Source: Hyalangium minutum
GTDB taxonomy: Bacteria; Myxococcota; Myxococcia; Myxococcales; Myxococcaceae
DNA length: 64,000 nucleotides
Reading direction: 5' to 3'
Assembly: GCF_000737315.1 (NCBI RefSeq)
Contig: NZ_JMCB01000010.1
Location: forward strand, 186,001-250,000
Notes under the pieces: generated by a model
What the model was told of the DNA's origin: nothing
The model's database searches: none
What the model saw: only the letters and a program-made list of their open reading frames with translations
Shown here: piece by piece, positions 40,227 through 56,040 of the stretch
Numbering within the stretch: the stretch's first letter is position 1
Layout of the letters: the number at the start of each line of letters is the position of its first letter
Program-made: the position numbers and the translations under genes

Positions 40227-40370
40227 GGGAGGTTTCCCCTACTGGGCACGCATGATTGCGTTCCCGGCCGCGAGCGTTTGGGACGTTGCGGTTGAGCCCC
40301 CCCATGGCAGGTTCCGTACCAATCACTGTCATCCAGTGAAAACAGGCACTTGAGCGCAGAGGCCCCCCAA

Positions 40371-40556
40371 CACAGTCCGCGATCGCGGACGATTCGTCCG
40401 CGTTGGGAGACGGCCCCCCCAAAAAGCGCTGGAATGACAAGGGCTTGCGCGAAAGGTGGCAGCTCCGGGCGCCTCGACGCATGGTGCCAACCTGTTGAAT
40501 TCACTGGAGTAGGTTTTGCCGCACACGACAGGGACCGTCCGCGATCGCGGACTGTG
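40371..40556. repeat. 21-bp inverted repeat pair, each with a 16-bp perfect palindrome
   Basis: CACAGTCCGCGATCGCGGACG (40371-40391) and its exact reverse complement (40536-40556); core GTCCGCGATCGCGGAC. Confidence 0.9.
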
Positions 40557-40559
40557 CCC

Positions 40560-40768
40560 GTCGACGGTACCCACCGGTGGGCAACAGCCGTTTCATGGTT
40601 CCGACCAGTCGGAAGCGTCGTTTCATGGTTCCGACCAGTCGGAAGCGCCGTTTCATGGTTCCGACCAGTCGGAAGCGCCGTTTCATGGTTCCGACCAGTC
40701 GGAAGCAGCCGCTTCATGGTTCCGACCAGTCGGAAGCAGCCGCTTCACGGTACCTACCGGTTGGCAGC
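40560..40768. repeat. Tandem array of 30-31-bp palindromic REP-like units
   Basis: Five near-identical units of GCCGTTTCATGGTTCCGACCAGTCGGAAGC (40587-40737) plus degenerate flanking units; each holds TTCCGAC-CA-GTCGGAA; no spacers. Confidence 0.95.
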
Positions 40769-40804
40769 GTCCACCGGGCACCTCGCCTATAACGGGAGAG
40801 CCTG

Positions 40805-41387
40805 CATCAGGTGGGGCCATGCCGGAGTTGGCGAGCTGCCGGATGAAATGGACCTGCAGCTGGGCGCGTGGCGCGCGATATTCCGCGAGCGGGGCACTGC
40901 GGCCGAGGCGGCGCCCACCCAGACCGGCCGCCGCACCCACCTTCAGTCCCCCGAACTCCCGCAGGAGCGCCTCGCTCCCGCCCAGCTGCGCGTGAAGCAA
41001 GGAAACACCGAGCAACTCCATCCGCTGGGCTCCGGCAGCATCACCGTGGGCAAGGACCCGAGCAACGAGGTGGTCATCCAGGACAAGTTCATCTCGAGCC
41101 GGCACCTGCGGGTGACACAGGGGGAGAAGGGCTTCCACGTGCAGGACTTGAACTCCACCAACGGCACGCTCCTGGACGGGGTGCGCCTGTTCGAGGCGAA
41201 GGTGCCGCTGAACACCGTGCTGCGCGTGGGCGAGACGGAGCTGGTGTCCGAGCCGGTGTCTGATGACCCGCAGTCAGCGCCCTTCGACGGGATTGTGGGC
41301 AGGGATCCGTCCATGAGGGAGCTGGTGAAGCGGCTGCAGAAGGTGGCACCCACCGACGTGCTGGTGACGGTGCTGGGCGAGTCCGGA
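40805..41387 (+). pseudogene. Fragment of FHA-domain sigma54-dependent enhancer-binding protein
   Basis: ELPDEMDLQLGAWR (tail of one FHA), full FHA (ITVGK...ISSRHL...DLNSTNGT), IVGRDPSM...VLVTVLGESG. Similarity stops inside Walker A (GESG|TGKE missing); no AAA+ core or HTH. Confidence 0.85.
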
Positions 41388-41473
41388 CGATTGAGCCAAG
41401 GGCGATCCACGTCGAATGACTCGCTCCAAAGCCATGTCGTCGTAGAGCACCTATTTCTCGCTCGGAACCGACC

Positions 41474-41541
41474 GATCGACACTGCCAACCAGTTGGTACC
41501 AGCCACCGGCCCGGATCGACACTGCCAACCAGTTGGCAGTG
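41474..41541. repeat. Two direct copies of a palindromic REP-like unit
   Basis: GATCGACACTGCCAACCAGTTGG at 41474 and 41514; the second extends to CACTGCCAAC-CA-GTTGGCAGTG (41520-41541). Confidence 0.85.
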
Positions 41542-41644
41542 AGCGCACGCCCAGATCCGCCGACAGTGATTGCTCAGAATCCATCGAGCGCCTGTTCACC
41601 ACTCGTGGCGATGACCTCCCATTGAGGCAGGCAGAGGCGGATTC

Positions 41645-43078
41645 TTACCGTGGAGGGGGCAGGCCCGCGCCTGAGGTGGACGGACGCCCCTGCTTGCCGG
41701 GATAGACGGGCACGTAGCACGCCTGCTGGTACATCTGGCCATTCACGGCCTCACACTCCCCTCGGCTCCCTTTCAGGCGCCCCCAACAGCCTCCGTTGAG
41801 CACCACCTGATGGGGGTGAGGGCAGCGGCCCTTCTTGTCGGGCTGGGCCTGTCCCTCGGAGAGCTCGGGGAGGCTCTCGGCCACCGCGCGCTCCGAGCCG
41901 GGCGAAGGGACCTGCTGTGGCAGATCCGAGGCCGCCTCCCCGAGCCCCGCAGTCTCCGTCTTGGCCGCTTCCTGCGTGGCGCTCAGGGGCACGGCGGCGG
42001 TAGCCTGGGAAGGCTCCTCGCGAACCGGCGGCGGCTCCTGCTGCACGAGGGCTCCGGCCCACAGGCCCAGGGCGCCCGCGGCCACCACGAGCCACGGCCG
42101 CCACACGGGCCCGGAGGTGGAGAGTGGAGCCTCCCGCGTTCCCCCTCGGTCTGCTTCGGGCTCGGGCACGCTCGGGGACGCGGAGTGCAGCGCATCCGCT
42201 GCCCGCTCCAGCGCGGGGACCAGCTCGGCCGCCGTGGGGCGCTGCTCAGGCAGAATCGTGAGCATGCGCAGAATCAGCTCACGCAGCGGCGGCGCCACCT
42301 GGGCGGAGAACAAGGCGCGCGGCAGCTTGAGCGCATCCAGCACCGCGCGTCCCTTCACGTCTTTCCGAGGCACACCCATCTCCGGGTACCTGCCGGTGGC
42401 GAGCACACAGGCGGTGACGCCCAGGGCGAACACATCATCCGCGGGCCGGGCCTGGTAGCGCTCGGAGGCGTTGCGCGCGTCGAGGCTGAAGAGCCAGGCC
42501 TCGGGGGAGCGGTACGCCGGAGTGCCCGGAGGCAGTTGCTGCGGAGTGAGGGTGTCGGCGCCGGGGGAGATGCTGGAGCCAAAGTCCATGAGGAACAGGC
42601 GGCTGTCCCAGCGGCGCACCAGGAGGTTGTCGCCCTTGAAGTCCCGGTGGAGCGCGTCCTGGGCATGGAGGTACTGGAGGGTGAGCGCCGCCTGGGCCAG
42701 GAGCCGCAACTGCTGCGCCGCCGAGGGGCTGTGCACGCGGCCCCACTCGTAGAGTGTCACGCCATCCACCCACTCCATGGCGATGAAGGGGTGCCGGGCG
42801 CCGGAGGGGCTCACCCAGTGGCCCGTGCCTATGAGCTGGGGAATGTGCGGGTGGAGCGAGCGGAACAGCAGGTCCTGCTCGCGCTGGTAGCGCGGGTCCT
42901 CGGCGAGCACGGCGACCTTGAGGGCCACGGGCGGCAGGTGCTCATGGCCGATGCGCACGGCGCGGTACACGGCGCCGTTGACGCCGCGGCCGGCCCAACC
43001 CACGACACGGAAGGGGCCCACGGGGGTGCCGGGAGGAAGCGCCGCAGGGTGGAGCGAGGGCTGGAAGGAGTTCGGCAT
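41645..43078 (-). CDS. Ser/Thr protein kinase (myxobacterial type) with TM and C-terminal Cys-containing region
   Basis: GRGVNGAVY, VALKVA, LHRDFKGDN, MDFG, GTPAYRSPE, DVFALG. Confidence 0.93.
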   Translation of the reverse strand: MPNSFQPSLHPAALPPGTPVGPFRVVGWAGRGVNGAVYRAVRIGHEHLPPVALKVAVLAEDPRYQREQDLLFRSLHPHIPQLIGTGHWVSPSGARHPFIAMEWVDGVTLYEWGRVHSPSAAQQLRLLAQAALTLQYLHAQDALHRDFKGDNLLVRRWDSRLFLMDFGSSISPGADTLTPQQLPPGTPAYRSPEAWLFSLDARNASERYQARPADDVFALGVTACVLATGRYPEMGVPRKDVKGRAVLDALKLPRALFSAQVAPPLRELILRMLTILPEQRPTAAELVPALERAADALHSASPSVPEPEADRGGTREAPLSTSGPVWRPWLVVAAGALGLWAGALVQQEPPPVREEPSQATAAVPLSATQEAAKTETAGLGEAASDLPQQVPSPGSERAVAESLPELSEGQAQPDKKGRCPHPHQVVLNGGCWGRLKGSRGECEAVNGQMYQQACYVPVYPGKQGRPSTSGAGLPPPR

Positions 43079-44561: not shown

Positions 44562-46157
44562 TCAGAGCAGCAGGCGGTGGGGCGAGAAGACGTCCTCGGG
44601 CACCTCCGGGAGCGCCCGCCCTGCCGCAAGCATCTCGACGGCCGTGTACCCGGCCTCCACGCAGTAGCTGCCCCCGTACCCGTTGAAGCCCGCGGCCACC
44701 ACGAGGCTCTGGGGATCCGCCCCGCTGCGGCGGAAGAAGCCCAGCGCCGGCAGCCGGTCGGGCGTAAAGGCCATGGGCCCTGTCCACACGCGCGAGGGAG
44801 GTTGTCCCCGCGTGTCCGGGAAGCGCCGGTCCGTCCCAGCCTTCACCAGTCCCAGCACCGCCATCGAGCGCTGGAGATCCTCCGGCGGAGGCGCGGGCCG
44901 ATCCAGCCCTCCGCCCACGTGCAGCATGCCGCGCCGCACGCCCTGCGCGTCCACGTACCGCGAGGCACCAGGGAAGTTGTAATAGAGATCCCCCTTCTTC
45001 TCGGTGACCGTCATCCCTTTCAGGCGATCCTCGACGTGCTCCAGGTTGAGGATCTGGCTCTGGAAGCAGGCGATTTGCTCGAGCTCGGGGAACAGGTGCG
45101 AGGTGAACGCGTTGGTCGCGACGATCACCCGCCGGGCGCGGATATCTCCCTCCGAGGTGCAGACAATGGGATCAGGCCCCGCCCCCGTCACGATGTTGTC
45201 AACGCGCACCCGGGTGTAGAGCCCCACGCCCCGCTCCAGGGCCTTGCCCAGCACGCCACAGACGAACTTGCGCGGGTGGTAGTTGCCGCTCTTGGGCGCG
45301 CACCGGCCGCCGAAATAGGATCGCAGCCCCACCTCCGCGAAGATCTTCTCGGGGCTCCAGTACACCAGCAACTCCTCGTTCCCAACGAGCGCCACCTCCT
45401 CCCTCAGCGCGACCTCCTCCTCGGCGGTCTCCGCGACGCGCAGCCAGCCGTGGGGCGAGTAGTCACAGTCGATCCGCTCCTCGGTGACGATCCGGCGGAA
45501 GCGCTCGCTGTTGCGCAGCCCGAAGCCCACCACCAGCCTCGCCTGCCGCTCCGCCTGCTCGCGAAGTTCCGCCTCTTGCAGCCCCGGGCGCGTCACCCGC
45601 AGGAACTTGTACCGCTCCCGGACGAGCCCCTCGTAGGGCCCCAGGAAGTTCTCGGGGATCAGCTCGAAGTTGCCGCCATTCCGTCCACTGGCCTGGCTGG
45701 CCGGATCCGCCAGGTCAACCACGGCGACGCGCTGGCCCGCCTGCACCAGCGGAAGGGCGTGGTAGGCCGCCGACGCCCCCGTGAGGCCCGCTCCAATGAT
45801 GAGCAGGTCGACCTCCGTGGGCAGCTCGGGCGTGGAGCGATAGGCCGCCAGGGGGTTGGGGAGGAGCTGCCAGTACGGCGTCTCCTCTTCAGGCATCGCG
45901 ATGAGGCCGCGCATCCGGGCTCCGACGCTGGCCACCCAGCTCTGGAAGGCAGCGGCGGCCCCGGGGTCGAAGCGAGGCCGGAGCAGCCGCTCTATCTCGT
46001 AGAGCGCCTCCTGGAGCGCGGGCGTGGTGCGTCCGTGGCCATCGACCAGGCCGGTGGCGGCGGCACGGAGCTCCACGAGATCGTCGCGGCGCACCTCCCG
46101 GAGCTCCGACTTCCGGTGGGCGAGACTCAGGAGCTGCGAGCTGGCATCCAAGGTCAT
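44562..46157 (-). CDS. FAD-dependent oxidoreductase (DAO/PuuB-like) with ~85-aa N-terminal extension
   Basis: LIIGAGLTG, ASGRNGG, VIVATNAF, WTGPMAFTPDRLP, GFNGYG. Confidence 0.9.
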   Translation of the reverse strand: MTLDASSQLLSLAHRKSELREVRRDDLVELRAAATGLVDGHGRTTPALQEALYEIERLLRPRFDPGAAAAFQSWVASVGARMRGLIAMPEEETPYWQLLPNPLAAYRSTPELPTEVDLLIIGAGLTGASAAYHALPLVQAGQRVAVVDLADPASQASGRNGGNFELIPENFLGPYEGLVRERYKFLRVTRPGLQEAELREQAERQARLVVGFGLRNSERFRRIVTEERIDCDYSPHGWLRVAETAEEEVALREEVALVGNEELLVYWSPEKIFAEVGLRSYFGGRCAPKSGNYHPRKFVCGVLGKALERGVGLYTRVRVDNIVTGAGPDPIVCTSEGDIRARRVIVATNAFTSHLFPELEQIACFQSQILNLEHVEDRLKGMTVTEKKGDLYYNFPGASRYVDAQGVRRGMLHVGGGLDRPAPPPEDLQRSMAVLGLVKAGTDRRFPDTRGQPPSRVWTGPMAFTPDRLPALGFFRRSGADPQSLVVAAGFNGYGGSYCVEAGYTAVEMLAAGRALPEVPEDVFSPHRLLL

Positions 46158-46795: not shown

Positions 46796-47473
46796 GTGCG
46801 ATTCCACCCCTTCGTGCTGAGCCTCTCCCTGCTCATGGGGAGCGTCTCGGCGGCCCAAGCTCCCGAGGAACTCACCCCTCCCCCACTGCCCCAGGAGGAA
46901 CCCTCTCCCCCCCCACTGCCCCAGGGCGAGAGCATCCCCTACCAGTACCGGCCCGAGAACGAGCTGCCTCCCGATCCGATCTTCTCGCGCATCCTGGTGG
47001 AGTCGACCGGAGGCGTGCTCGGAGGCGCGGTCATGGGACTCTCGGGCCTCCTCTCAGGAGCGCCCGCGCTCCGCGAGGTGAACTGCAAGTCGGGCGAGGT
47101 GTGCCTCCTCCCGCTCCTCTTCGTCATGGTCCCCGCCGCCTTCGTGGGTATCCCCTACGGCGTCGAAGGCTTCGCCGACGGAATGTCGGGCCGGGGCGAG
47201 CTTCTCCCCACCATGGCCGGCAGCGTGCTGGGCACAGGCGTTGGCTTCCTCTCGGGGTACGCCACGGGGAGCACCGCAGGATGGATCGTCAGCCTCATCC
47301 TCTGGCCCATCACTGGCGCCGTCGTGGGCTATGAGCTCTCGCATGCCTTCAACCTGCGCAGCGCCAGCGCGGCGGGGCCGGGCCCTTCCGCCAGCACGGG
47401 TCCCCGCATGGTGCCCCTCCTCGGCGCGACGCCCCAGGGAGGTTTCTTCACGGGGCTCTCGGGATGCTTCTGA
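46796..47473 (+). CDS. Secreted/membrane hypothetical protein with Gly-rich TM segments
   Basis: Signal peptide, Pro-rich linker, GxxxG-rich hydrophobic segments, C-terminal GLSGCF. Confidence 0.75.
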   Translation: MRFHPFVLSLSLLMGSVSAAQAPEELTPPPLPQEEPSPPPLPQGESIPYQYRPENELPPDPIFSRILVESTGGVLGGAVMGLSGLLSGAPALREVNCKSGEVCLLPLLFVMVPAAFVGIPYGVEGFADGMSGRGELLPTMAGSVLGTGVGFLSGYATGSTAGWIVSLILWPITGAVVGYELSHAFNLRSASAAGPGPSASTGPRMVPLLGATPQGGFFTGLSGCF

Positions 47474-48940
47474 TCAGCGGCGGGCCCGCGCCTGCCTCAC
47501 GTACGGCGAGACATGATCGCCGTACCGCTCCTCGATCCACGGCTCCAGGTGGTCCGCGCCACGAATGACGCCGCGGCACCGCGGACTGCCGCACTCGCAC
47601 CGGAACTCCGCCATCCCCGGTCCATAGAGGGTGGCGTAATCGATCGTGATGGGCTCTCCCTCCTGGATCGGCCGGCGCGCCACGCAGTCGAGTCCCTCGT
47701 TCCAGGCGTTCGGATCGCACGAGTGGTTGAGGAGCGACCATTCCTGAGGAGCCTCGCCTCCGACCGCGAAGACGCCCTCCGAGACCGGATACGCCCATTG
47801 CGGCAGCATCGCGCGCTGCCAATCGGCCCAGGTCTTCTCGAGGTGCTGACGGCTCGCCAGGACGTGGGCACGCTCCTCGCCCACGAGGATGCGCTCACCG
47901 GCGGCCAGGTTCATCGCGGCCACCAGGCCATAGCCACCGGGCTGGCCGTACTCGGTCCGGAACCGGGGACGGCGTGCCGCCTGACGGCGCAGGGCGCACG
48001 CGATGATGTGCTCCAGGAAGCCTCGCTGCCCCGCGGGATCCTGCGAGAGGATGAGGTCCGCACTGCCGAACTCACCCGGTGGGTAGAAGACGCCGCAGGA
48101 CGGGTTCACATCCAGCAGGAACAGCCGCCCGTCCGGCCCCATGCGGACATCGAGGCGCGCATACCCCACCGCCTTCGTCGCGGTGAAGACGCGCTGGGCC
48201 AGCTGCCTCAGCCGCCCCTCCAGGACCGGATCCGCCACACGCCGCATGCCCATCTGCTCATAGTCCGACCACTTGAGATCAAAGTGCTTGAAGGTCTCTC
48301 CCTCGGGGAAGCGGATCTCCATGGGGATGTAGACCCGGGGGAGCAGCTCTCCGATGCCGGGCTCGGCGACCAGCACGGTGAACTCGGGGCCCTCGACGAA
48401 CTCTTCAATCAGCGCGGCCCCGTACTGCGACACCATGTGCTCGGCCCTGTCGAGCAGCGCCTCGCGCGTCTCGACCCGGGAGCCCTGGGTCAGGCCGATG
48501 CTGCCGTAGCCGTTCGGGTGCTTGACGATCAGCGGGAAGCGCAGCGCCTTGGCGGCCCGCTCGGCCTCGGCGCGCTGGCCGGCGAACGCATACCGAGGCG
48601 TGTCCACGCCGATGCGGTGACAGACGCCCTTGAGCCACTGTCGGGTCGGCTCATAGAACTCCGGAGTGGGGCCCGTGTACGCTACGCCGAGCCGCTCCAG
48701 CTCGATGACCACCTCCAGCCCCGGCAGATCCTCATCCCACGCCGCATCGCACATGTTGATGAAGACGTCGAAGCCGCGCTGGGCCAGCTTCCGGACCGTC
48801 TGCACGGCGGTGGCCTTGTGGATCGGGCTCCGTTCCCAGTCCTGCTCCGGCATCAACCGGGAGGGATCCTGAACCGGATCGAACCCCTTGAACGGGGAGC
48901 TGGACTGCTCGTAGGAGGGGAACAGCACGCACAGTTTCAT
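47474..48940 (-). CDS. D-Ala-D-Ala-ligase-like ATP-grasp fused to SET/post-SET domain
   Basis: PLIVKHPNGYGSIG, IEEFVEGPEF, YARLDVR, LLDVNP; C-terminal LNHSCDPN, ITIDY, CECGSPRC. Start MKLCVLF at 48940. Confidence 0.9.
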   Translation of the reverse strand: MKLCVLFPSYEQSSSPFKGFDPVQDPSRLMPEQDWERSPIHKATAVQTVRKLAQRGFDVFINMCDAAWDEDLPGLEVVIELERLGVAYTGPTPEFYEPTRQWLKGVCHRIGVDTPRYAFAGQRAEAERAAKALRFPLIVKHPNGYGSIGLTQGSRVETREALLDRAEHMVSQYGAALIEEFVEGPEFTVLVAEPGIGELLPRVYIPMEIRFPEGETFKHFDLKWSDYEQMGMRRVADPVLEGRLRQLAQRVFTATKAVGYARLDVRMGPDGRLFLLDVNPSCGVFYPPGEFGSADLILSQDPAGQRGFLEHIIACALRRQAARRPRFRTEYGQPGGYGLVAAMNLAAGERILVGEERAHVLASRQHLEKTWADWQRAMLPQWAYPVSEGVFAVGGEAPQEWSLLNHSCDPNAWNEGLDCVARRPIQEGEPITIDYATLYGPGMAEFRCECGSPRCRGVIRGADHLEPWIEERYGDHVSPYVRQARARR

Positions 48941-48977
48941 GGGCGCATGATAGGGGTGCTTTCTCAGCGGGAGAATC

Positions 48978-49523
48978 ATGAGTCGGAAGAGCTACCTGCC
49001 TCACACCTGGGCCGATGAGCGCGTGAGCGTCAAGCCCTCGCCCATCGACGGGAAAGGGCTCTTCGCCACCCGCGACATCCCCGAGGGCACCGTGCTCATG
49101 GTCTGGGGCGGCCAGGTGGTGGACCGGAAGACCATCGACTACTCCCAGTACCGGGCCGAGACGGTGGTCGCCATCAGCGAGGCCGAGTACCTCGCCCTCC
49201 CCCGCTCGGACACCCGCGAGGCCCTGGATGTCTACCTCAACCACTCGTGCGATCCGACGGCCTGGCTCATTGATGAGGTGACCATAGTGGCTCGGCGCCC
49301 CATCCAGGCGGGCGAGGAGATCACCACGGAGTTCGCCACCTGGTTCGACTATGAGCCCGAGGTGTCCTACTCCGAGAACTGGGCCTGCAAGTGCGGCAGC
49401 CCTCTGTGCCGGAAGGCCCTGAGCGCGCAGGATTGGAGGCGGGCGGATCTCCAGGAGAAGTACGCGGGGCACTTCTCGCCCTTCCTGGAGAGGCGCATCC
49501 ATGAGGAGCGGCAGAAGGTCTGA
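48978..49523 (+). CDS. SET domain protein
   Basis: SPIDGKGLFATRDI, YLNHSCDP, GEEITTEF, CKCGSPLC. Confidence 0.92.
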   Translation: MSRKSYLPHTWADERVSVKPSPIDGKGLFATRDIPEGTVLMVWGGQVVDRKTIDYSQYRAETVVAISEAEYLALPRSDTREALDVYLNHSCDPTAWLIDEVTIVARRPIQAGEEITTEFATWFDYEPEVSYSENWACKCGSPLCRKALSAQDWRRADLQEKYAGHFSPFLERRIHEERQKV

Positions 49524-49529
49524 GCGCCT

Positions 49530-49991
49530 TCAGCGCTGGCGCGAAGCCCGCTGTAGGAGCCGCGTGATGTGGGGGTTGAGGCGCTGTCCCTGGAGCGAGT
49601 GCTCCGGCAGCTGCGAAGCCCCGGCGATCCTCCGGAGGCAGTGAGGGCTCCCGCAGGCACAGTCGAAGGGCTCCGCCATCGTCCACTCGGTCGAGGGATA
49701 AAAGAAGGTGATCGGCTCGCCCGCTGCGATGGGCTTGAGCGCGACCACCTGCCACTGCTCGACGTCGAAGAAGGCGTTGGGATGGCAGCTGTGATTGGTA
49801 AACGTGAGGACCGAGGGCAAGAGCGTGATGTGCTCGTCCTCGGAGACCTGGAGCGTCAGCTGGGCCGGGCGATCGTACGTGGCCAGAGCGCGAAACGGTG
49901 TGAGCACTTCCCCCGCAGCAAAAGCGCGGAGGCTCCGGAGAGAGCGCTGGCCGAGCTGCTCATCGTGGAGGACCTCTAGCGGAAGGGCCAT
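49530..49991 (-). CDS. SET domain protein
   Basis: FTNHSCHPN, GEPITFFYPSTE, FDCACGSPHC. Start inferred at 49991. Confidence 0.88.
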   Translation of the reverse strand: MALPLEVLHDEQLGQRSLRSLRAFAAGEVLTPFRALATYDRPAQLTLQVSEDEHITLLPSVLTFTNHSCHPNAFFDVEQWQVVALKPIAAGEPITFFYPSTEWTMAEPFDCACGSPHCLRRIAGASQLPEHSLQGQRLNPHITRLLQRASRQR

Positions 49992-50046: not shown

Positions 50047-52269
50047 TCAGAAGAAGAAGCTGACGGTGGCCTGGGCGTTGAACGGCGCGCCGGGTGTGAA
50101 GTGCAGATCCTCACACCCCTCGAAGGTGTCCTCCCCAGCCGGGCGCGTTCCCGCTGGACAGCTCTCCGGTCCCGTCTCGTCCGGCAGCCGGGAGACGTTG
50201 GCGAACTGAGCCTCGCGCCACTCCGTGTTCAGCAGGTTCTGGAGCCCCAGCGTCACCTCGAACCAGGAGCCTCGGTAACCCGCGGTCACGTCCACCCGGG
50301 TAAAGCCCTCCGCCGTGAGGAAGCGATCCTCCGTGGCAGGCCGATCTCCCAGGTGGATCGCCCCGATGCGGCCATATGCGCCACTCGGATGCCGCGCTGA
50401 CACTCCGCCAGCCAGGATCAGCGTCGGTGCCAGCGCCACTGCATCGGCGTTCCCCGCGTTCCCCACGAAGGTGGCCCGAGACACCGTGAGATCCGCGTCC
50501 GCGAAGAGCCACGGCAGGATGCGCAGCCGTGCCTCCGCCTCCAAGCCTCGCCGCCGCGTGGGGCCTCGCGCCTCCGTGGAACCCTCGTCCCCAACCCACA
50601 CCAGCTCGCTGTCCAGATCCAACAGGAAGACCGAGCCGGCCAGGTCCAGCACGTCGAACAGCCGCGTCCTCGCGCCCAGCTCGTAGCCGCGCGCCTGGGT
50701 CAGCGGCGTCACCGGATCCGGCTGGCGCACCACCCCTCTCGCGTCATTCGAGTGAAAGCCCGCACCCGCGTTGAGGTACAGCTCCGTCTCCGGAATGGCT
50801 CCGAAGACGAGGCTCGCCTTGGGCGAGATGCGCGAGGCCTGCCGCACCCCAGAGGTCTTCGTGTCCTGTGTGGTGAGATCCTCCAGCTTGTCATCCACGT
50901 CGAAGCCGAAGAGATCCCCTCGCACGCCCAGCACCGTGCGCAGCCAGGGCGTGAGGATGATGTCCTCCTGGGCGTACAGCCCGAGGCTCCCCTCGCGCAC
51001 GCTCGCGTCCACCACGGGCGCCAGGCGCTCGCGCGCGCGATCGTTGAAGAGGCTGTTCTCAATCGAGTCGGTGCGCAGCTGCGTACCGAATGTCGTCTCG
51101 AAGGACAGCCCCCTCCACTGGTGCCGGAAGCGATAGCTGGCCTGGAGCCCCGCCATCGTCCGAGCGTCGTGCTGCTCGATCATGTCTCCATTGATCGGAT
51201 CCCGGCTGAAGAACGTGAAGTTCGAGAAGAGGTTGAGCCGGTACTGCACGAGGTACGCCTCCACGCGCACCTCCCCCTCCTCGCCGGTGCGCGCGCTATA
51301 GGTCGCGGAGAGGCTGTGCCGCTGGGAGTTTCCTCCCTCCGTGGGATCGATCGTCCCGAAGCGGCTGAGCCGGCCCGCACGCACCTCGCGCAAGGGAACC
51401 TGCCCGCTCGCGTTCCATCCGCTGCCGTAGGACATGAGCCGGAGCGACAGCGACGCGCGATCCGACACGTCCCGGGTGACCTGGGTGAACAGACTGAAGC
51501 GCTGAAGCTTCTCGGGAGAGTCGAACGGGCCGTTCGTCCCGTACACCTGCGCCGCGATGATCGGATCCCAGCCCTCGACCTCTGGGGCGGCGATGAAGAG
51601 CCCTCGCCACGTGTCGAACGAGCCACCGCTCAGCGTCACCTGGCTCTTCTCGAAGTGCCGCCGCGTCACGAGGTTGATCGCCCCCGCCGTGGCAAAGTCT
51701 CCGAACCGGGCGAAGTACGGGCCCTTGGCCACCTCCACCCGCTCGATGAGCTCGGGGATGAGCCAGTTGAGATCCGCGTACCCCTGGCCATGCGCGTGGC
51801 TCACCATGTTCACGGGCACGCCGTCGACGAAGAGCGCCACATCCGTGCCGTGGTCCGCGTCGAATCCGCGCAGGAAGTACTGGTTCGCCTTGCCCCCTCC
51901 CGCGTGCTGGTTCGCGTAGAGGCCGGGGACGACTTGCAGGATGTCCACGGGACGTGGGTGGGGGCGCAGCAGGAAGTCGCGATCCCGCACCGTCGTCGAT
52001 GACGCCGCGGTGAAGGACCTCCGAGACGTAATGGTTGTCTCCAGCCGGCTGGGAGTCTCCGGGGGGGTGGGCGCGGAGACTTCCTCGGAAACAGCCGGCG
52101 CAGGAGGCTCGGCCGGTGGGGGTGGCGGAGGTGTTTCTGGAGTGGGCGGAGGCGAGGCAGGAACTGCCTCCGGAGGGAGAGACGCTTCTGGGGACTGAGC
52201 AAAGGACGGCGAGGCCGCGCACAAAAGCGCAGCGAGCATGGCCCGGCGGGCCACGCAAAGGCGTGACAT
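50047..52269 (-). CDS. TonB-dependent receptor
   Basis: Signal peptide, Pro-rich linker, plug motifs (QHAGGGKANQYFLRGFDADHGTD, ERVEVAKGPY), C-terminal Phe. Confidence 0.95.
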   Translation of the reverse strand: MSRLCVARRAMLAALLCAASPSFAQSPEASLPPEAVPASPPPTPETPPPPPPAEPPAPAVSEEVSAPTPPETPSRLETTITSRRSFTAASSTTVRDRDFLLRPHPRPVDILQVVPGLYANQHAGGGKANQYFLRGFDADHGTDVALFVDGVPVNMVSHAHGQGYADLNWLIPELIERVEVAKGPYFARFGDFATAGAINLVTRRHFEKSQVTLSGGSFDTWRGLFIAAPEVEGWDPIIAAQVYGTNGPFDSPEKLQRFSLFTQVTRDVSDRASLSLRLMSYGSGWNASGQVPLREVRAGRLSRFGTIDPTEGGNSQRHSLSATYSARTGEEGEVRVEAYLVQYRLNLFSNFTFFSRDPINGDMIEQHDARTMAGLQASYRFRHQWRGLSFETTFGTQLRTDSIENSLFNDRARERLAPVVDASVREGSLGLYAQEDIILTPWLRTVLGVRGDLFGFDVDDKLEDLTTQDTKTSGVRQASRISPKASLVFGAIPETELYLNAGAGFHSNDARGVVRQPDPVTPLTQARGYELGARTRLFDVLDLAGSVFLLDLDSELVWVGDEGSTEARGPTRRRGLEAEARLRILPWLFADADLTVSRATFVGNAGNADAVALAPTLILAGGVSARHPSGAYGRIGAIHLGDRPATEDRFLTAEGFTRVDVTAGYRGSWFEVTLGLQNLLNTEWREAQFANVSRLPDETGPESCPAGTRPAGEDTFEGCEDLHFTPGAPFNAQATVSFFF

Positions 52270-52330
52270 GAGAGACCTCAAGGATGGAAGAAGAGACAGA
52301 AGACAGCCCGTGACAACAGCGGGGCTGCTC

Positions 52331-52849
52331 CTAGGGGCCTTGAGGCATCGCGGTGGGACGAAGCGGAGCGACTGGCACCCACTCGCGGCGAGGGGCCGCT
52401 ACGGCGTGGAGCCGCTCCCAACGAACTGCTGGCAACAACAGGAGGGGTTGCGACAACGCCACCGCCTGCAGGTGCTCCACGGCCCCCCAGGCGTGGCGGT
52501 GCGGCTTGCCCTTTCCATGGCGGTGCGAGTGCCCGTGCTCATGGCCGTGGCCGTCCACCGCGTGGCCGTGTCCGAGCCCCTCTGCTTCGCTGGACTCGTC
52601 CTCCGTGGGAGGGCTCTGAGCCCCCATCGCGCCAGGGGGATCCACCCACTCCTGCGCCGCCTCCGGAAGGTCCAGCTCTCCCGCGTGGTCGGCCACCGCG
52701 TGCAGCACCGGCCCCAGCACGAGGCCGTACACCACGACCATCAGGCCGAGGCATGCCAAGTCACGGCGATCTTGAGGGTGGCTCAGCACGGGGCGTTCGA
52801 CAGGCGCGGGAATGACCGGAGCGCTGGCTAGCCGTCTTCCGGCGGACAT
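52331..52849 (-). CDS. His-rich membrane-anchored protein upstream of TonB-dependent receptor
   Basis: TM LGLMVVVYGLVLGPVLH; HGHAVDGHGHEHGHSHRH...HRH...EH; C-terminal PQGP. Start uncertain. Confidence 0.65.
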   Translation of the reverse strand: MSAGRRLASAPVIPAPVERPVLSHPQDRRDLACLGLMVVVYGLVLGPVLHAVADHAGELDLPEAAQEWVDPPGAMGAQSPPTEDESSEAEGLGHGHAVDGHGHEHGHSHRHGKGKPHRHAWGAVEHLQAVALSQPLLLLPAVRWERLHAVAAPRREWVPVAPLRPTAMPQGP

Positions 52850-54074: not shown

Positions 54075-56040
54075 GTAGAGTCGACGGGAGGCGCGGTGCC
54101 GCTCGGGTTCGTCAGCGCCTGCTGCGAGGGTCCACTTTCGCTCGCCCTCTCGCCGAGTCTCACCCACGGTCCGTTTCCTCCACGCCGCTCATCGAACCGG
54201 ACGTGCAGATTTCCTGCATCCGGCTCTCGGACAGGTTTCACGCGACGCGTCTCAGCGCAGGAGCGCACGTACCTCCAGTACTCCAAGGTTCCGGTGCACC
54301 TCGTTGTACTTGAAGCGTGACGTAGCTCGCGCCATCTCGTGCCTCCTGCTCAGGAAGTTCCTCACCCGTTCTGTGACGTGCCAGTCCAGCACGTTGAACG
54401 CGTGCATCGACGAGTCGTAGGCAAAGTACGTCGCCCACCCTCGCAGGAACAGGTTGAGCTCGCCCGCTATCTCCTCCCAGCGCTCCGTCCTGCCGCGCCG
54501 GAGGATTCGGCTCACTTCACCTCGGGCGTGCTCCATTGCCTTCTTCGAAGGTCGGGCTCCCAGGTACTTCTGGCCGGTCTTCTTGTAGACCAGTGGCCCC
54601 AGCTCGTACCCCAGAAAGCGGAAATGCTCCTTCCGCGCATCGCGAATGCTCGTCTTCGTCTCGTTGAGCGTCAGCTTCATCCCAGCGAGCCACCTCTTCA
54701 CTTGCGCCAACACCTCTGTGGCTCCCTTGCGGGCTACCACCACGAAGTCATCGGCGTAGTTGACGATCTTCGCTCCGCTCCTCTTCATCAGCTCGCTCTG
54801 GGCGAACACCTTCAGCAACCGGTTGATGTAGATGTTCGCCAGCAGCGGTGAGATGACACCGCCCTGCGGTGTCCCCTGCTTCGAGCGCTTGCCTCCGCTG
54901 TACTTCGGGCGTCCCTGCTCGTCCCTCTCTTCCACAGGCACCTTCAGCCACATCTTCAAAAGATGCAGCACCGCCTTGTCCGCAACTCTCCTCGCGACGC
55001 TCTTCATCAGCTCCGCGTGGGGAATCGTGTCGAAGTACTTCGAGAGATCCGCATCGACCACTTGGGTTCGCCCCTGCTTCAGCTCCTGATGAACCTCCTT
55101 GACCGCATCCACCGCACTGCGTCCGGGTCGGTACCCGTAGGCAGCCTCGCTCAAGTCGGCCTCGAAGATTGGCTCCAGAATGAGCTTCGCCGCCGTCTGG
55201 ACCACACGATCTCTGATCGTGGGGATACCCAGAGGCCGCTCGCCTCCCCCTGGCTTGGGTATCAGCACCCTCCTCACGGGCTGGGGCCGATACGTCTTCC
55301 CTTGCAGCTCGCGCTGCAACTCCTCAAGCCAACGCTCCTCGCCGTACGCCTCGATCTGCTCGAAGGTCTGTCCGTCCACTCCTGCGGCGCCCCGCTTCTG
55401 TTTCGACTGCTTGAGCGCCTCCGTCAGGACGTCCCGCCGATGGATCTTGTCGTACAGCGCGTAGAACCGGAACGTCGGCTCCGCCTTGGCCTTCGCGTAC
55501 AGCTTCGCTCGGAGCTCTTCGAGCTTTGTAGGGGTTGTTAGGCTCACGCCAATCTCCCGCTGCGTCCGCTCCTTGCGAAGCACCCTGAACCAGGGCTCCT
55601 TCCCTCCACGGTCGTTACCCGCTTCATCGGTAGTACGAGCCCCTCCGACTCCTGGCCTCCGCCACGCTCCAAGGGCGTGTTCGGGTCGCTTTCCCGCTCG
55701 GACCAGGTCTCCCGTGTTGCGCACTTCACCGTGTGCTCACATGCCGCGCCCCACTACCCCGGTGGTCCACCCGGCGGCGATGCTGTCGACCTTCTCGCCG
55801 GGTGCTTGGCCTTCCCTGTATGTGCGCCAGGTCGGCTCCCACGATTGCCCTTTCGGGGCCTGCTCGGGCTTCACTCACGTTGCGGCCTGCGAACTCGCTC
55901 GACCTCCTTTCGAGGCCTTCTGTCTCTGGGCTTCGAGTCCCAGAGTCGCCTCTCGTCCCCGCCAGATAGCTACCGAGGGGGTCGACTTCCTCCTCGGGCG
56001 GGACTTCCTCCCGCTGGTCAAGTGCACCTTCACGGCGCAC
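54075..56040 (-). mobile_element. Group II intron
   Basis: 5' end GTGCGCCGTG at 56040; domain V GAGAGCCGGATGCAGGAAATCTGCACGTCCGGTTCGATGAGCGGCG (about 54183-54228); 3' end ...GACTCTAC at 54075; internal RT/maturase ORF. Confidence 0.92.
54252..55547 (-). CDS. ltrA: Group II intron reverse transcriptase/maturase (no endonuclease domain)
   Basis: RFYALYDK, RPLGIPTIRDRVVQ, GTPQGGVISPLLANIY, YADDF, FLGY, LRGWATYF. GTG start 55547 after a GGGAG RBS. Confidence 0.95.
   Translation of the reverse strand: MSLTTPTKLEELRAKLYAKAKAEPTFRFYALYDKIHRRDVLTEALKQSKQKRGAAGVDGQTFEQIEAYGEERWLEELQRELQGKTYRPQPVRRVLIPKPGGGERPLGIPTIRDRVVQTAAKLILEPIFEADLSEAAYGYRPGRSAVDAVKEVHQELKQGRTQVVDADLSKYFDTIPHAELMKSVARRVADKAVLHLLKMWLKVPVEERDEQGRPKYSGGKRSKQGTPQGGVISPLLANIYINRLLKVFAQSELMKRSGAKIVNYADDFVVVARKGATEVLAQVKRWLAGMKLTLNETKTSIRDARKEHFRFLGYELGPLVYKKTGQKYLGARPSKKAMEHARGEVSRILRRGRTERWEEIAGELNLFLRGWATYFAYDSSMHAFNVLDWHVTERVRNFLSRRHEMARATSRFKYNEVHRNLGVLEVRALLR

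Follow-up and report, generated by a model that had tools for sequence, protein, structure and literature searches.

A cluster of three genes encoding SET domains, one of them fused to an ATP-grasp ligase domain resembling D-alanine-D-alanine ligase (Ddl), was analysed in Hyalangium minutum (assembly GCF_000737315.1). The stretch of DNA considered, here called the window, comprises 64,000 nt (positions 186,001-250,000 of contig NZ_JMCB01000010.1), and all coordinates refer to it. The fusion gene, G1 (47474..48940, minus strand), encodes a protein of 488 amino acids (aa) matching Pfam PF07478 and PF00856, in which a Ddl-like ATP-grasp domain (aa 1-325, 47966..48940) is followed by a SET domain with post-SET region and C-terminal helix (aa 326-488, 47477..47965). 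G2 (48978..49523, plus strand) encodes a stand-alone SET protein of 181 aa with a match to Pfam SET. G3 (49530..49991, minus strand) encodes a stand-alone SET protein of 153 aa, which falls into a subfamily resembling the methyltransferase BurB and marked by the motif FFYPSTEW.

Gene models and sequence motifs

The open reading frame (ORF) of G1, if called mechanically, reaches position 48979. Because its Met14 (MK[LI]C[VI]L) is the start in 15 of 15 aligned homologues, the true start is placed at 48940, and exactly 37 bp (48941..48977) therefore separate it from the ATG of the divergently transcribed G2 at 48978, as had been stated in the preliminary description of this locus. G3 could be extended to a GTG at 50114; homologues of 150-177 aa favour the ATG at 49991. 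G2 and G3 are convergent, with 6 bp between their stop codons.

The three NHSCxP and CxCGSPxC modules reported earlier were all located. They read NHSCDP (47711-47728) and CECGSPRC (47576-47599) in G1, NHSCDP (49239-49256) and CKCGSPLC (49386-49409) in G2, and NHSCHP (49779-49796) and CACGSPHC (49638-49661) in G3; G1 also carries GYG (47918-47935) and DYAT (47630-47641). Scores against Pfam SET (PF00856) were above the gathering cut-off of 22.4 bits for each protein, with 39.0 bits (1.2e-9) for G1, 51.6 bits (1.4e-13) for G2 and 33.4 bits (6.6e-8) for G3. In G1, Dala_Dala_lig_C (PF07478) matched aa 138-296 of the ORF (2e-15). No further copy of a SET domain or of a related ATP-grasp was found in the 64 kb window by tblastn with each domain.

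Ratios of nonsynonymous to synonymous substitution rates (dN/dS) against orthologues were 0.17-0.31 for G1, 0.18-0.47 for G2 and 0.10-0.18 for G3. Since all lie between 0.10 and 0.47, the three genes are maintained under purifying selection. The 37-bp region between G1 and G2 contained no match to the sigma-70 consensus, and promoter and terminator scans gave nothing beyond the expectation from shuffled sequences. A search for riboswitches and other cis-acting RNAs with Rfam at the gathering threshold, covering the window and nine operon loci, returned only tRNA and a group II intron.

The ligase domain of G1

The AlphaFold (AF2) model of G1, calculated from 59 sequences, had a predicted local distance difference test score (pLDDT) of 91 and a predicted template modelling score (pTM) of 0.86. 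Its best 50 neighbours in a Foldseek search of the PDB were all D-Ala-D-Ala ligases, with E-values down to 1.6e-18, TM(target) values of 0.65-0.81 over about 330 aligned columns and all three subdomains retained. Residues were matched by pairwise and profile alignment to the Ddl structures 4zqi and 3r23, in which E15 remained unaligned. The counterparts of Ddl K144, K215, R255, D257 and N272 are invariant in the G1 family, and the omega-loop, FKHFDLKW in G1 (48269-48292), is retained as a near-invariant F.HFDLKW.

The likeness does not extend to the substrate site. At the D-Ala site, Ddl Y216 and H63 are replaced by an invariant Trp and an invariant Cys, the position of S150 holds a variable small residue (G/A/S), and S281/L282 of the D-Ala2 site are replaced by a conserved FYPP..GSAD. 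The NCBIfam models of Ddl scored G1 far below their cut-offs (TIGR01205 60.3 bits, cut-off 245.65; NF002378 59.7 bits, cut-off 243). Scores were lower still with RimK (TIGR00768, 25.2 bits, cut-off 143.4) and LysX (17.3 bits, cut-off 275.6), and the Pfam scan gave no match of G1 to the family of tubulin-tyrosine ligases (TTL). The structural model thus places the G1 ligase by fold in the Ddl branch rather than in the RimK, LysX or TTL branches.

The sequence DVN (48104-48112), where Ddl-type enzymes have EVN, had been singled out in the preliminary description. It is indeed present, with Asp at the position of Ddl E270, but 44 of the 59 aligned family members carry Glu (41 of them as EIN), whereas the 15 members with Asp are the myxobacterial group and a few others. 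DVN is thus a lineage variant of EIN and was rejected as a hallmark of the family.

Three SET subfamilies

Judged from their sequences, the SET domains of G1, G2 and G3 fall into three different subfamilies. The G1 domain shares about 43% identity with G2 in the C-terminal half and 35% with G3, and a helix following the post-SET cysteines is common to all three. The His and Cys of NHxC are invariant in the alignments of all three families. The ATP/Mg residues of the ligase, NHxC, the catalytic Tyr of G1 and G3 and the post-SET cysteines (CxCx4C) are all invariant or nearly so. The catalytic or pocket Tyr occurs as a near-invariant DY in the G1 family and as an invariant FY in the G3 family; G2 has Phe at the canonical position, which is variable (F/S/C/Q/Y/W) among its relatives. 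In BurB, the corresponding mutant Y124F retains more than 60% of the activity (PMC12542666).

The G1 family profile matched both the SET domain of MLL1 (5e-13) and BurB (1e-13). The best PDB match of G2 was the MLL1 SET domain (6.5e-9), and MLL1, ASH1L and SETD2 were matched by the G1 SET domain and G2 alike. By sequence, G2 is a paralogue of the SET domain fused in G1.

For G3, the closest known enzyme is BurB. BurB of B. thailandensis and MSMT of S. mobaraensis are SET-domain methionine S-methyltransferases, and in BurB the sulfur of free L-methionine is methylated inside a pocket that a gating loop seals (PMC12542666). BurB (PDB 9l4t) was the best sequence match of G3 (phmmer 2e-15, 37% identity over 113 residues) and also the best Foldseek match (6.5e-12, TM 0.74/0.71) of its AlphaFold (AF2) model (pLDDT 96.6), whereas the runners-up NSD, ASH1L and SETD2 reached 3e-7 or weaker. 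BurB Y124, H93, T73, Q75 and H81 correspond to Y98, H67, T46, Q48 and H54 of G3, which are invariant or near-invariant in its family. The invariant family signature is FFYPSTEW..F.C.C, where BurB reads MDYASTED.

Distribution of the fusion

The ATP-grasp-SET fusion is widespread, occurring in about ten phyla. Among 8000 candidates scored, 1182 homologues of G1 were found at E<=1e-5, most of them about 50% identical over 97% of the length. An exhaustive HMMER search of 1.84 billion cluster representatives (clusters at 50% identity) gave 265 clusters at E<=1e-30, and a scan of one genome per species yielded at least 523 relatives. They belong to the Myxococcota, Planctomycetota, Acidobacteriota, Chloroflexota, Gemmatimonadota, Rhodothermales, Chlorobium, Verrucomicrobiota, Bacteroidota and Actinomycetota. 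Unusual architectures (members P0332, P0346, P0422 and P0471) comprise a protein of 1415 aa with four SET domains and an ATP-grasp, two fused Ddl-like ATP-grasps, the order ATP-grasp-SET-ATP-grasp, and an ATP-grasp joined to a clostripain-type C11 peptidase.

In the NCBI and JGI databases, the homologues of G1 carry only the labels 'SET domain-containing protein-lysine N-methyltransferase' or 'D-alanine-D-alanine ligase'. Neither NCBIfam nor PADLOC has a curated model for G1-type fusions, and genes of this type are currently mis-annotated. PADLOC gave no anti-phage defence match for G1, G2, G3, the second ATP-grasp described below, or two neighbours of G1, the DAO-family and DUF2267 genes. Full-text literature searches returned no paper joining a bacterial ATP-grasp or Ddl-like ligase to a SET domain.

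Coupling of ligase and SET genes

Genome and metagenome scans were evaluated for the best 80 loci among at most 600 pattern matches, so that all fractions given here refer to samples. Fifty of the best 80 genome loci contain an ATP-grasp-SET fusion, while the remainder, mostly from Anaerolineales, have the ligase alone. In 20 of the 50 fusion loci a G3-type SET domain is found in the same ORF or abutting it, including cases with a second ATP-grasp in between. It is C-terminal in the same ORF in L007, L011 and L035, an abutting upstream ORF in L002, L008, L013, L018, L019, L031, L033, L041 and L042, and a downstream ORF in L015, L017 and L045; in L026, L038, L040, L046 and L072 the two are parted only by a second Ddl-like ATP-grasp paralogue. 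Of the 120 best protein matches, 30 are 611-668 aa long, and the four of these that were aligned all carry a second, C-terminal SET domain with the G3 signature.

The association also holds in reverse. Among 80 metagenomic loci found via the G3 motif, an ATP-grasp gene lies directly downstream of the G3-family gene in 42. If only the 48 loci whose downstream sequence reaches 1.5 kb or more are counted, the number is 30. The 80 loci include 26 with the complete order G3, second ATP-grasp, ATP-grasp-SET fusion. Stop and start codons in these operons often overlap, by 4 bp. The G3-family loci without an ATP-grasp come mainly from one Bacteroidota lineage with housekeeping synteny.

From this fusion and operon evidence, a functional coupling of the ATP-grasp and SET activities is strongly supported. 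De novo clustering of the ORFs within about 6 kb of the match at the 80 loci revealed no other conserved gene family near the fusions: apart from the families of the ATP-grasp and SET genes, together with ORFs antisense to them, the leftover clusters reflected synteny among close Anaerolineales or Bacteroidota genomes. With nothing else conserved beside the 50 fusions, the module is self-contained.

At the Chlorobium loci L018 and L019, a gene for an ABC exporter-type protein (ABC_membrane and ABC_tran, 587 aa) was observed downstream of the G3 and ATP-grasp-SET genes (at about 11.9-14.1 kb in L019), beside a further partial G3-like SET match; a similar ABC gene occurs in L016. It might export the product.

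Partnership of G2 with G1

Six Archangiaceae-like contexts (L081/82, L083 from Hyalangium versicolor, L085/86, L087/88, L090 and L091), whose flanks are otherwise unrelated, have an orthologue of G2 (73-90% identity) transcribed divergently from G1, the two starts lying 38-61 bp apart; L084 contains only a G2 remnant. In L054, a Myxococcales metagenome-assembled genome, a G2-like SET gene lies directly upstream of a SET-less ATP-grasp. By contrast, G2 relatives with 45-53% identity in the candidate phyla radiation (CPR) and other bacteria stand alone among housekeeping genes. G2 is therefore tied to G1 in myxobacteria only and represents a myxobacterial add-on.

L081 and the window share nucleotide homology only in a block of 2039 bp (92.8% identity), which is bounded by the stop codons of G2 and G1. 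The synonymous divergence (dS) of G1 was 0.34 against L090, otherwise the closest genome, exceeding the 0.09-0.18 of the flanking genes, and 0.17 against L081. Because G1 is nearer to the L081 copy, which shares nothing but this block, the data suggest that the G2-G1 pair was recombined or relocated.

The combination of G1, G2 and G3 with a TonB-dependent receptor and a DAO-family gene recurs only in L090 (G3 95% identical) and L091 (83%); other Archangiaceae-like genomes possess G2-G1 without G3. Conservation of the neighbourhood, which had been proposed as a check, is thus seen across phyla for the coupling of G1 with G3-type SET genes, but not for the three-gene unit, which is restricted to these two relatives.

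Comparison with known systems

Compared with the Ddl/VanA family, G1 shares the three-subdomain fold (TM about 0.8), the residues for ATP, Mg and the acyl-phosphate, and the omega-loop, but it falls below the Ddl cut-offs, has a remodelled substrate site, is fused to a SET domain and lacks a cell-wall gene context. G3 resembles BurB and MSMT in its small single-domain SET fold, its post-SET region and the absence of a GxG motif, and BurB sets the precedent of a free amino acid as substrate for a SET enzyme in bacteria. However, G3 has only 37% identity and its own FFYPSTEW signature, several ligand contacts of BurB are not conserved in it, and its genomic partners are ATP-grasp ligases, whereas those of BurB are the enzymes leading from S-methylmethionine (SMM) to dimethylsulfoniopropionate (DMSP).

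With about 180 aa and an MLL-like SET and post-SET, G2 is similar to stand-alone bacterial SET proteins such as chlamydial NUE and Legionella LegAS4/RomA, and there is a weak match to the N-terminus of LegAS4. G2 differs from them in having no secretion signal or effector context, in the replacement of the catalytic Tyr by Phe and in its link to an ATP-grasp in myxobacteria.

By analogy only, the architecture recalls N-acetylglutaminylglutamine amide synthase (Ngg), a fusion of GNAT and ATP-grasp domains, and carnosine synthase with carnosine N-methyltransferase. These systems likewise combine an ATP-grasp dipeptide ligase with a group-transfer enzyme, produce a modified dipeptide from common amino acids and need no further dedicated genes, but the ligase is from another subfamily and the partner is a GNAT or a class I methyltransferase, not a SET enzyme.

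A SET-type domain and an ATP-grasp ligase domain are also joined in one polypeptide in eukaryotic TTLL12, which consists of a SET-like and a tubulin-tyrosine-ligase-like domain; the human protein lacks key catalytic residues and showed no activity (PMC3520985). The SET domain of TTLL12 is N-terminal and SETD3-like and its ligase TTL-type, whereas in G1 the order is reversed, the ligase is Ddl-type and both domains retain their catalytic motifs.

Discussion

The module described here is a widespread variant of amidoligase-plus-methyltransferase systems, built from known enzyme families, and in the window it takes an elaborated myxobacterial form to which a further, paralogous SET gene has been added. 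For its function, we give about an even chance to a self-contained route of ATP-dependent ligation and methylation by S-adenosylmethionine (SAM) that leads to a small methylated amino-acid conjugate. A small-molecule product is favoured because the ligase is by fold in the Ddl branch and not in the RimK, LysX or TTL branches, because the closest enzyme to G3, its recurrent partner, is a SET protein with proven activity on a free amino acid, and because the two ligases and two SET domains in a tight operon of many lineages resemble a short biosynthetic route. A pathway of ligation followed by methylation had been put forward in the preliminary description for a small amine or peptide or a protein tag; the functional coupling in it is supported by fusions across phyla and by operons with 4-bp overlaps, and the small-molecule target is plausible in view of the Ddl-like fold and the proximity of G3 to BurB.

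In the mechanism that we propose, the ATP-grasp domain of G1 would turn a carboxylate into an activated acyl-phosphate and couple it with an amine, and the fused SET domain would transfer methyl groups from SAM. G3 would most likely place a methyl group on an N or S heteroatom, either in a free amino acid or in the product of ligation. G2 is a paralogue of the G1 SET domain that turned into a dedicated divergent partner in myxobacteria only. The product might be dipeptide-like here, one unit longer in lineages that add the second Ddl-like ligase, and may bear a cationic (ammonium or sulfonium) group. These steps are proposed because the formation of acyl-phosphate and amide bonds is established chemistry of the ATP-grasp superfamily, as SAM-dependent N- and S-methylation is for the SET superfamily. 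The analysis shows what the domains are, that their catalytic motifs are intact, that the genes are fused or linked in operons and that purifying selection acts on them; the preference for a small-molecule over a protein substrate, the chemistry and order of the steps and the product are inferred. In a wider form, to which we assign somewhat less than an even chance, Ddl-like ligases with one to four SET domains would constitute a widespread bacterial pathway from common amino acids to a methylated, possibly onium-type (trimethylammonium or sulfonium) metabolite resembling a di- or tripeptide, e.g. a compatible solute or signal. If so, much of the SET diversity in bacteria would act on small molecules instead of proteins.

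Several points weigh against this small-molecule route. The likeness of G1 to Ddl in Foldseek and profile comparisons concerns the fold and says nothing of the substrate class. The BurB ligand contacts H72, S88, R133 and H138 are replaced by L45, L62, E107 and A112 in G3, and genes of the burI/D/E type (SMM decarboxylase, aminotransferase, dehydrogenase) were found neither among the window neighbours nor in related loci. An extra SET is missing from about half of the fusion loci, and in some lineages the ligase occurs by itself; methylation is therefore dispensable for part of the family. The best matches of G2 are histone lysine methyltransferases, and the occurrence of its relatives in housekeeping contexts of reduced CPR genomes hints at protein targets. 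One member of the ATP-grasp family is fused to a clostripain-type C11 peptidase, which might mean peptide or protein substrates. Finally, a protein substrate whose gene lies elsewhere would fit the lack of a conserved neighbour equally well.

These latter observations bear on the modification of proteins or peptides, in which the ATP-grasp would attach one or more amino acids to a target protein through a carboxylate, in the manner of RimK on S6 and of TTL/TTLL enzymes on tubulin, and the SET domains would methylate lysines of the same target, making the system a prokaryotic counterpart of TTLL12. The main activity of SET domains is the methylation of lysines in proteins, G2 and the fused SET domain both match MLL1, ASH1L and SETD2, the G2-family genes of CPR genomes lie among translation and replication genes, and TTLL12 unites the same two kinds of domain; the C11 peptidase fusion fits as well. 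Protein-modifying enzymes such as RimK need not adjoin the genes of their substrates. Nevertheless, we consider this explanation, though a serious rival, unlikely to apply, given a ligase that by fold and profile scores is Ddl-like and not RimK-, LysX- or TTL-like, and a recurrent partner closest to the small-molecule enzyme BurB. Two Ddl-like ligases per operon would be unusual for a tagging system, and the ORF clustering around the fusions gave no conserved candidate for a substrate or carrier protein.

If G3 were instead a methionine S-methyltransferase like BurB or MSMT, the cluster would yield S-methylmethionine, or a sulfonium compound derived from it by ligation, to serve as an osmolyte of the DMSP type or as a building block. 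BurB is the best match of G3 in sequence (2e-15) and structure (TM 0.74), its residues Y124, H93, T73, Q75 and H81 have counterparts kept throughout the G3 family, and it grips methionine via main-chain atoms (PMC12542666), so that divergence need not alter the substrate. We hold this to be quite improbable, as equivalents of BurI/D/E (SMM decarboxylase, aminotransferase and aldehyde dehydrogenase) are missing from the locus, S88, H72, R133 and H138 of BurB are not conserved in G3, and the family has FFYPSTEW of its own in place of MDYASTED.

It is very improbable that the SET genes are independent and became neighbours by an accident of rearrangement, with G3 belonging to the TonB unit, G2 acting as a separate protein methyltransferase and G1 alone being a ligase-methyltransferase. 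Such an accident would account for a triple cluster confined to two close relatives, for the Archangiaceae-like genomes with G2-G1 and no G3, for the L081 block that carries the G2-G1 pair alone between unrelated flanks, and for the distance of 55 bp between the TonB receptor gene and G3 downstream of it, in which no terminator-like site lies. It does not account for the fusions and operons of G3-type SETs with G1-type genes in many phyla, nor for the reverse association; G2 stays beside G1 through six genomic contexts, a G2-like SET gene lies upstream of a SET-less ATP-grasp in one Myxococcales locus, and there are no other SET genes in 64 kb. A cell-wall D-Ala-D-X ligase variant remodelling peptidoglycan precursors, suggested by Ddl, VanA and VanG as the closest fold and profile matches of G1, is scarcely credible in view of 60 bits against Ddl-model cut-offs of 243-246, the replacements Y216W, H63C, S150G/A and S281/L282 by FYPP..GSAD, the lack of a mur or dcw context and the fusion to a SET domain.

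The route to a small methylated conjugate would matter beyond this locus. In bacteria, SET domains are commonly interpreted either as histone-mimicking effectors or as methyltransferases of protein lysines. Only recently did BurB provide an example that uses a free amino acid; here, SET domains are linked with Ddl-like ligases in a compact module of two to four domains, hosted by soil and freshwater bacteria of about ten phyla. Identification of the product would give a function to hundreds of clusters now called 'D-alanine-D-alanine ligase' or 'protein-lysine N-methyltransferase', could reveal a new class of methylated metabolites and would bear on small-molecule methylation as an old role of the SET fold.

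Neighbouring genes and other features of the window

Downstream of G1 lies a gene for a DAO-family oxidoreductase dependent on flavin adenine dinucleotide (44562..46157, minus strand; Pfam DAO 2e-41). It had been described as PuuB-like and its co-occurrence with the SET genes suggested as a check. The assignment to PuuB was not supported: there is a match to Pfam DAO only and none specific to PuuB. The best NCBIfam models (AmaA, aminophosphonate oxidoreductase, MnmC and ThiO) gave 40-56 bits against cut-offs of 174-633, and the best PDB match was an L-amino acid deaminase (2.7e-6). The oxidase was absent from the 50 and from 6 further fusion loci and present only in the two relatives L090 and L091, in the latter with a 4-bp overlap between the G1 stop and the DAO start. 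It is a lineage-specific neighbour whose membership in the system is uncertain.

As candidate partners, DAO, DUF2267, the TonB receptor and the ORF at 46796 were all rejected: tblastn placed them beside SET genes only in L090 and L091, a weak match to the TonB receptor in L007 being the one exception. DUF2267 and a 649-bp segment containing ORF 46796-47473 are variable insertions between G1 and the DAO gene. The segment (46838-47486) lies just beyond the G1 stop, on its downstream side; L090, the nearest relative, does not have it, and L091 lacks both the segment and DUF2267. ORF 46796-47473 (plus strand) has a signal-peptide-like start, a Pro-rich stretch with a 30-bp repeat in two copies and Gly-rich hydrophobic segments; it gave no Pfam match.

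The TonB-dependent receptor gene (50047..52281, minus strand; Pfam Plug and TonB_dep_Rec) lies 55 bp upstream of G3, and the terminator scan found no terminator-like site between the two. The same order of TonB receptor gene and G3 is present in L090 and L091 and is not conserved elsewhere. The receptor is a lineage-specific neighbour and probably belongs to a separate metal-uptake unit. A His-rich ORF of 172 aa (52331-52849, minus strand) is directly upstream of the receptor gene, and the pair resembles such a unit, which is probably unrelated to the SET genes.

The GC content is high (about 67%) and, like the closest homologues, suggests an Archangiaceae-like genome. A group II intron occupies 54075-56016 (minus strand), with matches to Rfam RF00029 (54075-54228) and RF02003 (55875-56016), between which lies the ORF of its reverse transcriptase/maturase (54252-55724; RVT_1 and GIIM). 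On the other side of the SET genes, a 30-bp unit is repeated six times in tandem at 40587-40769 with 92% matches. The array lies upstream of the start of an FHA-domain ORF (40350-41705, plus strand) or overlaps this start. The ORF is adjoined by a Ser/Thr protein kinase gene (41645-43078, minus strand; Pkinase 1e-23), which is typical myxobacterial signalling content.

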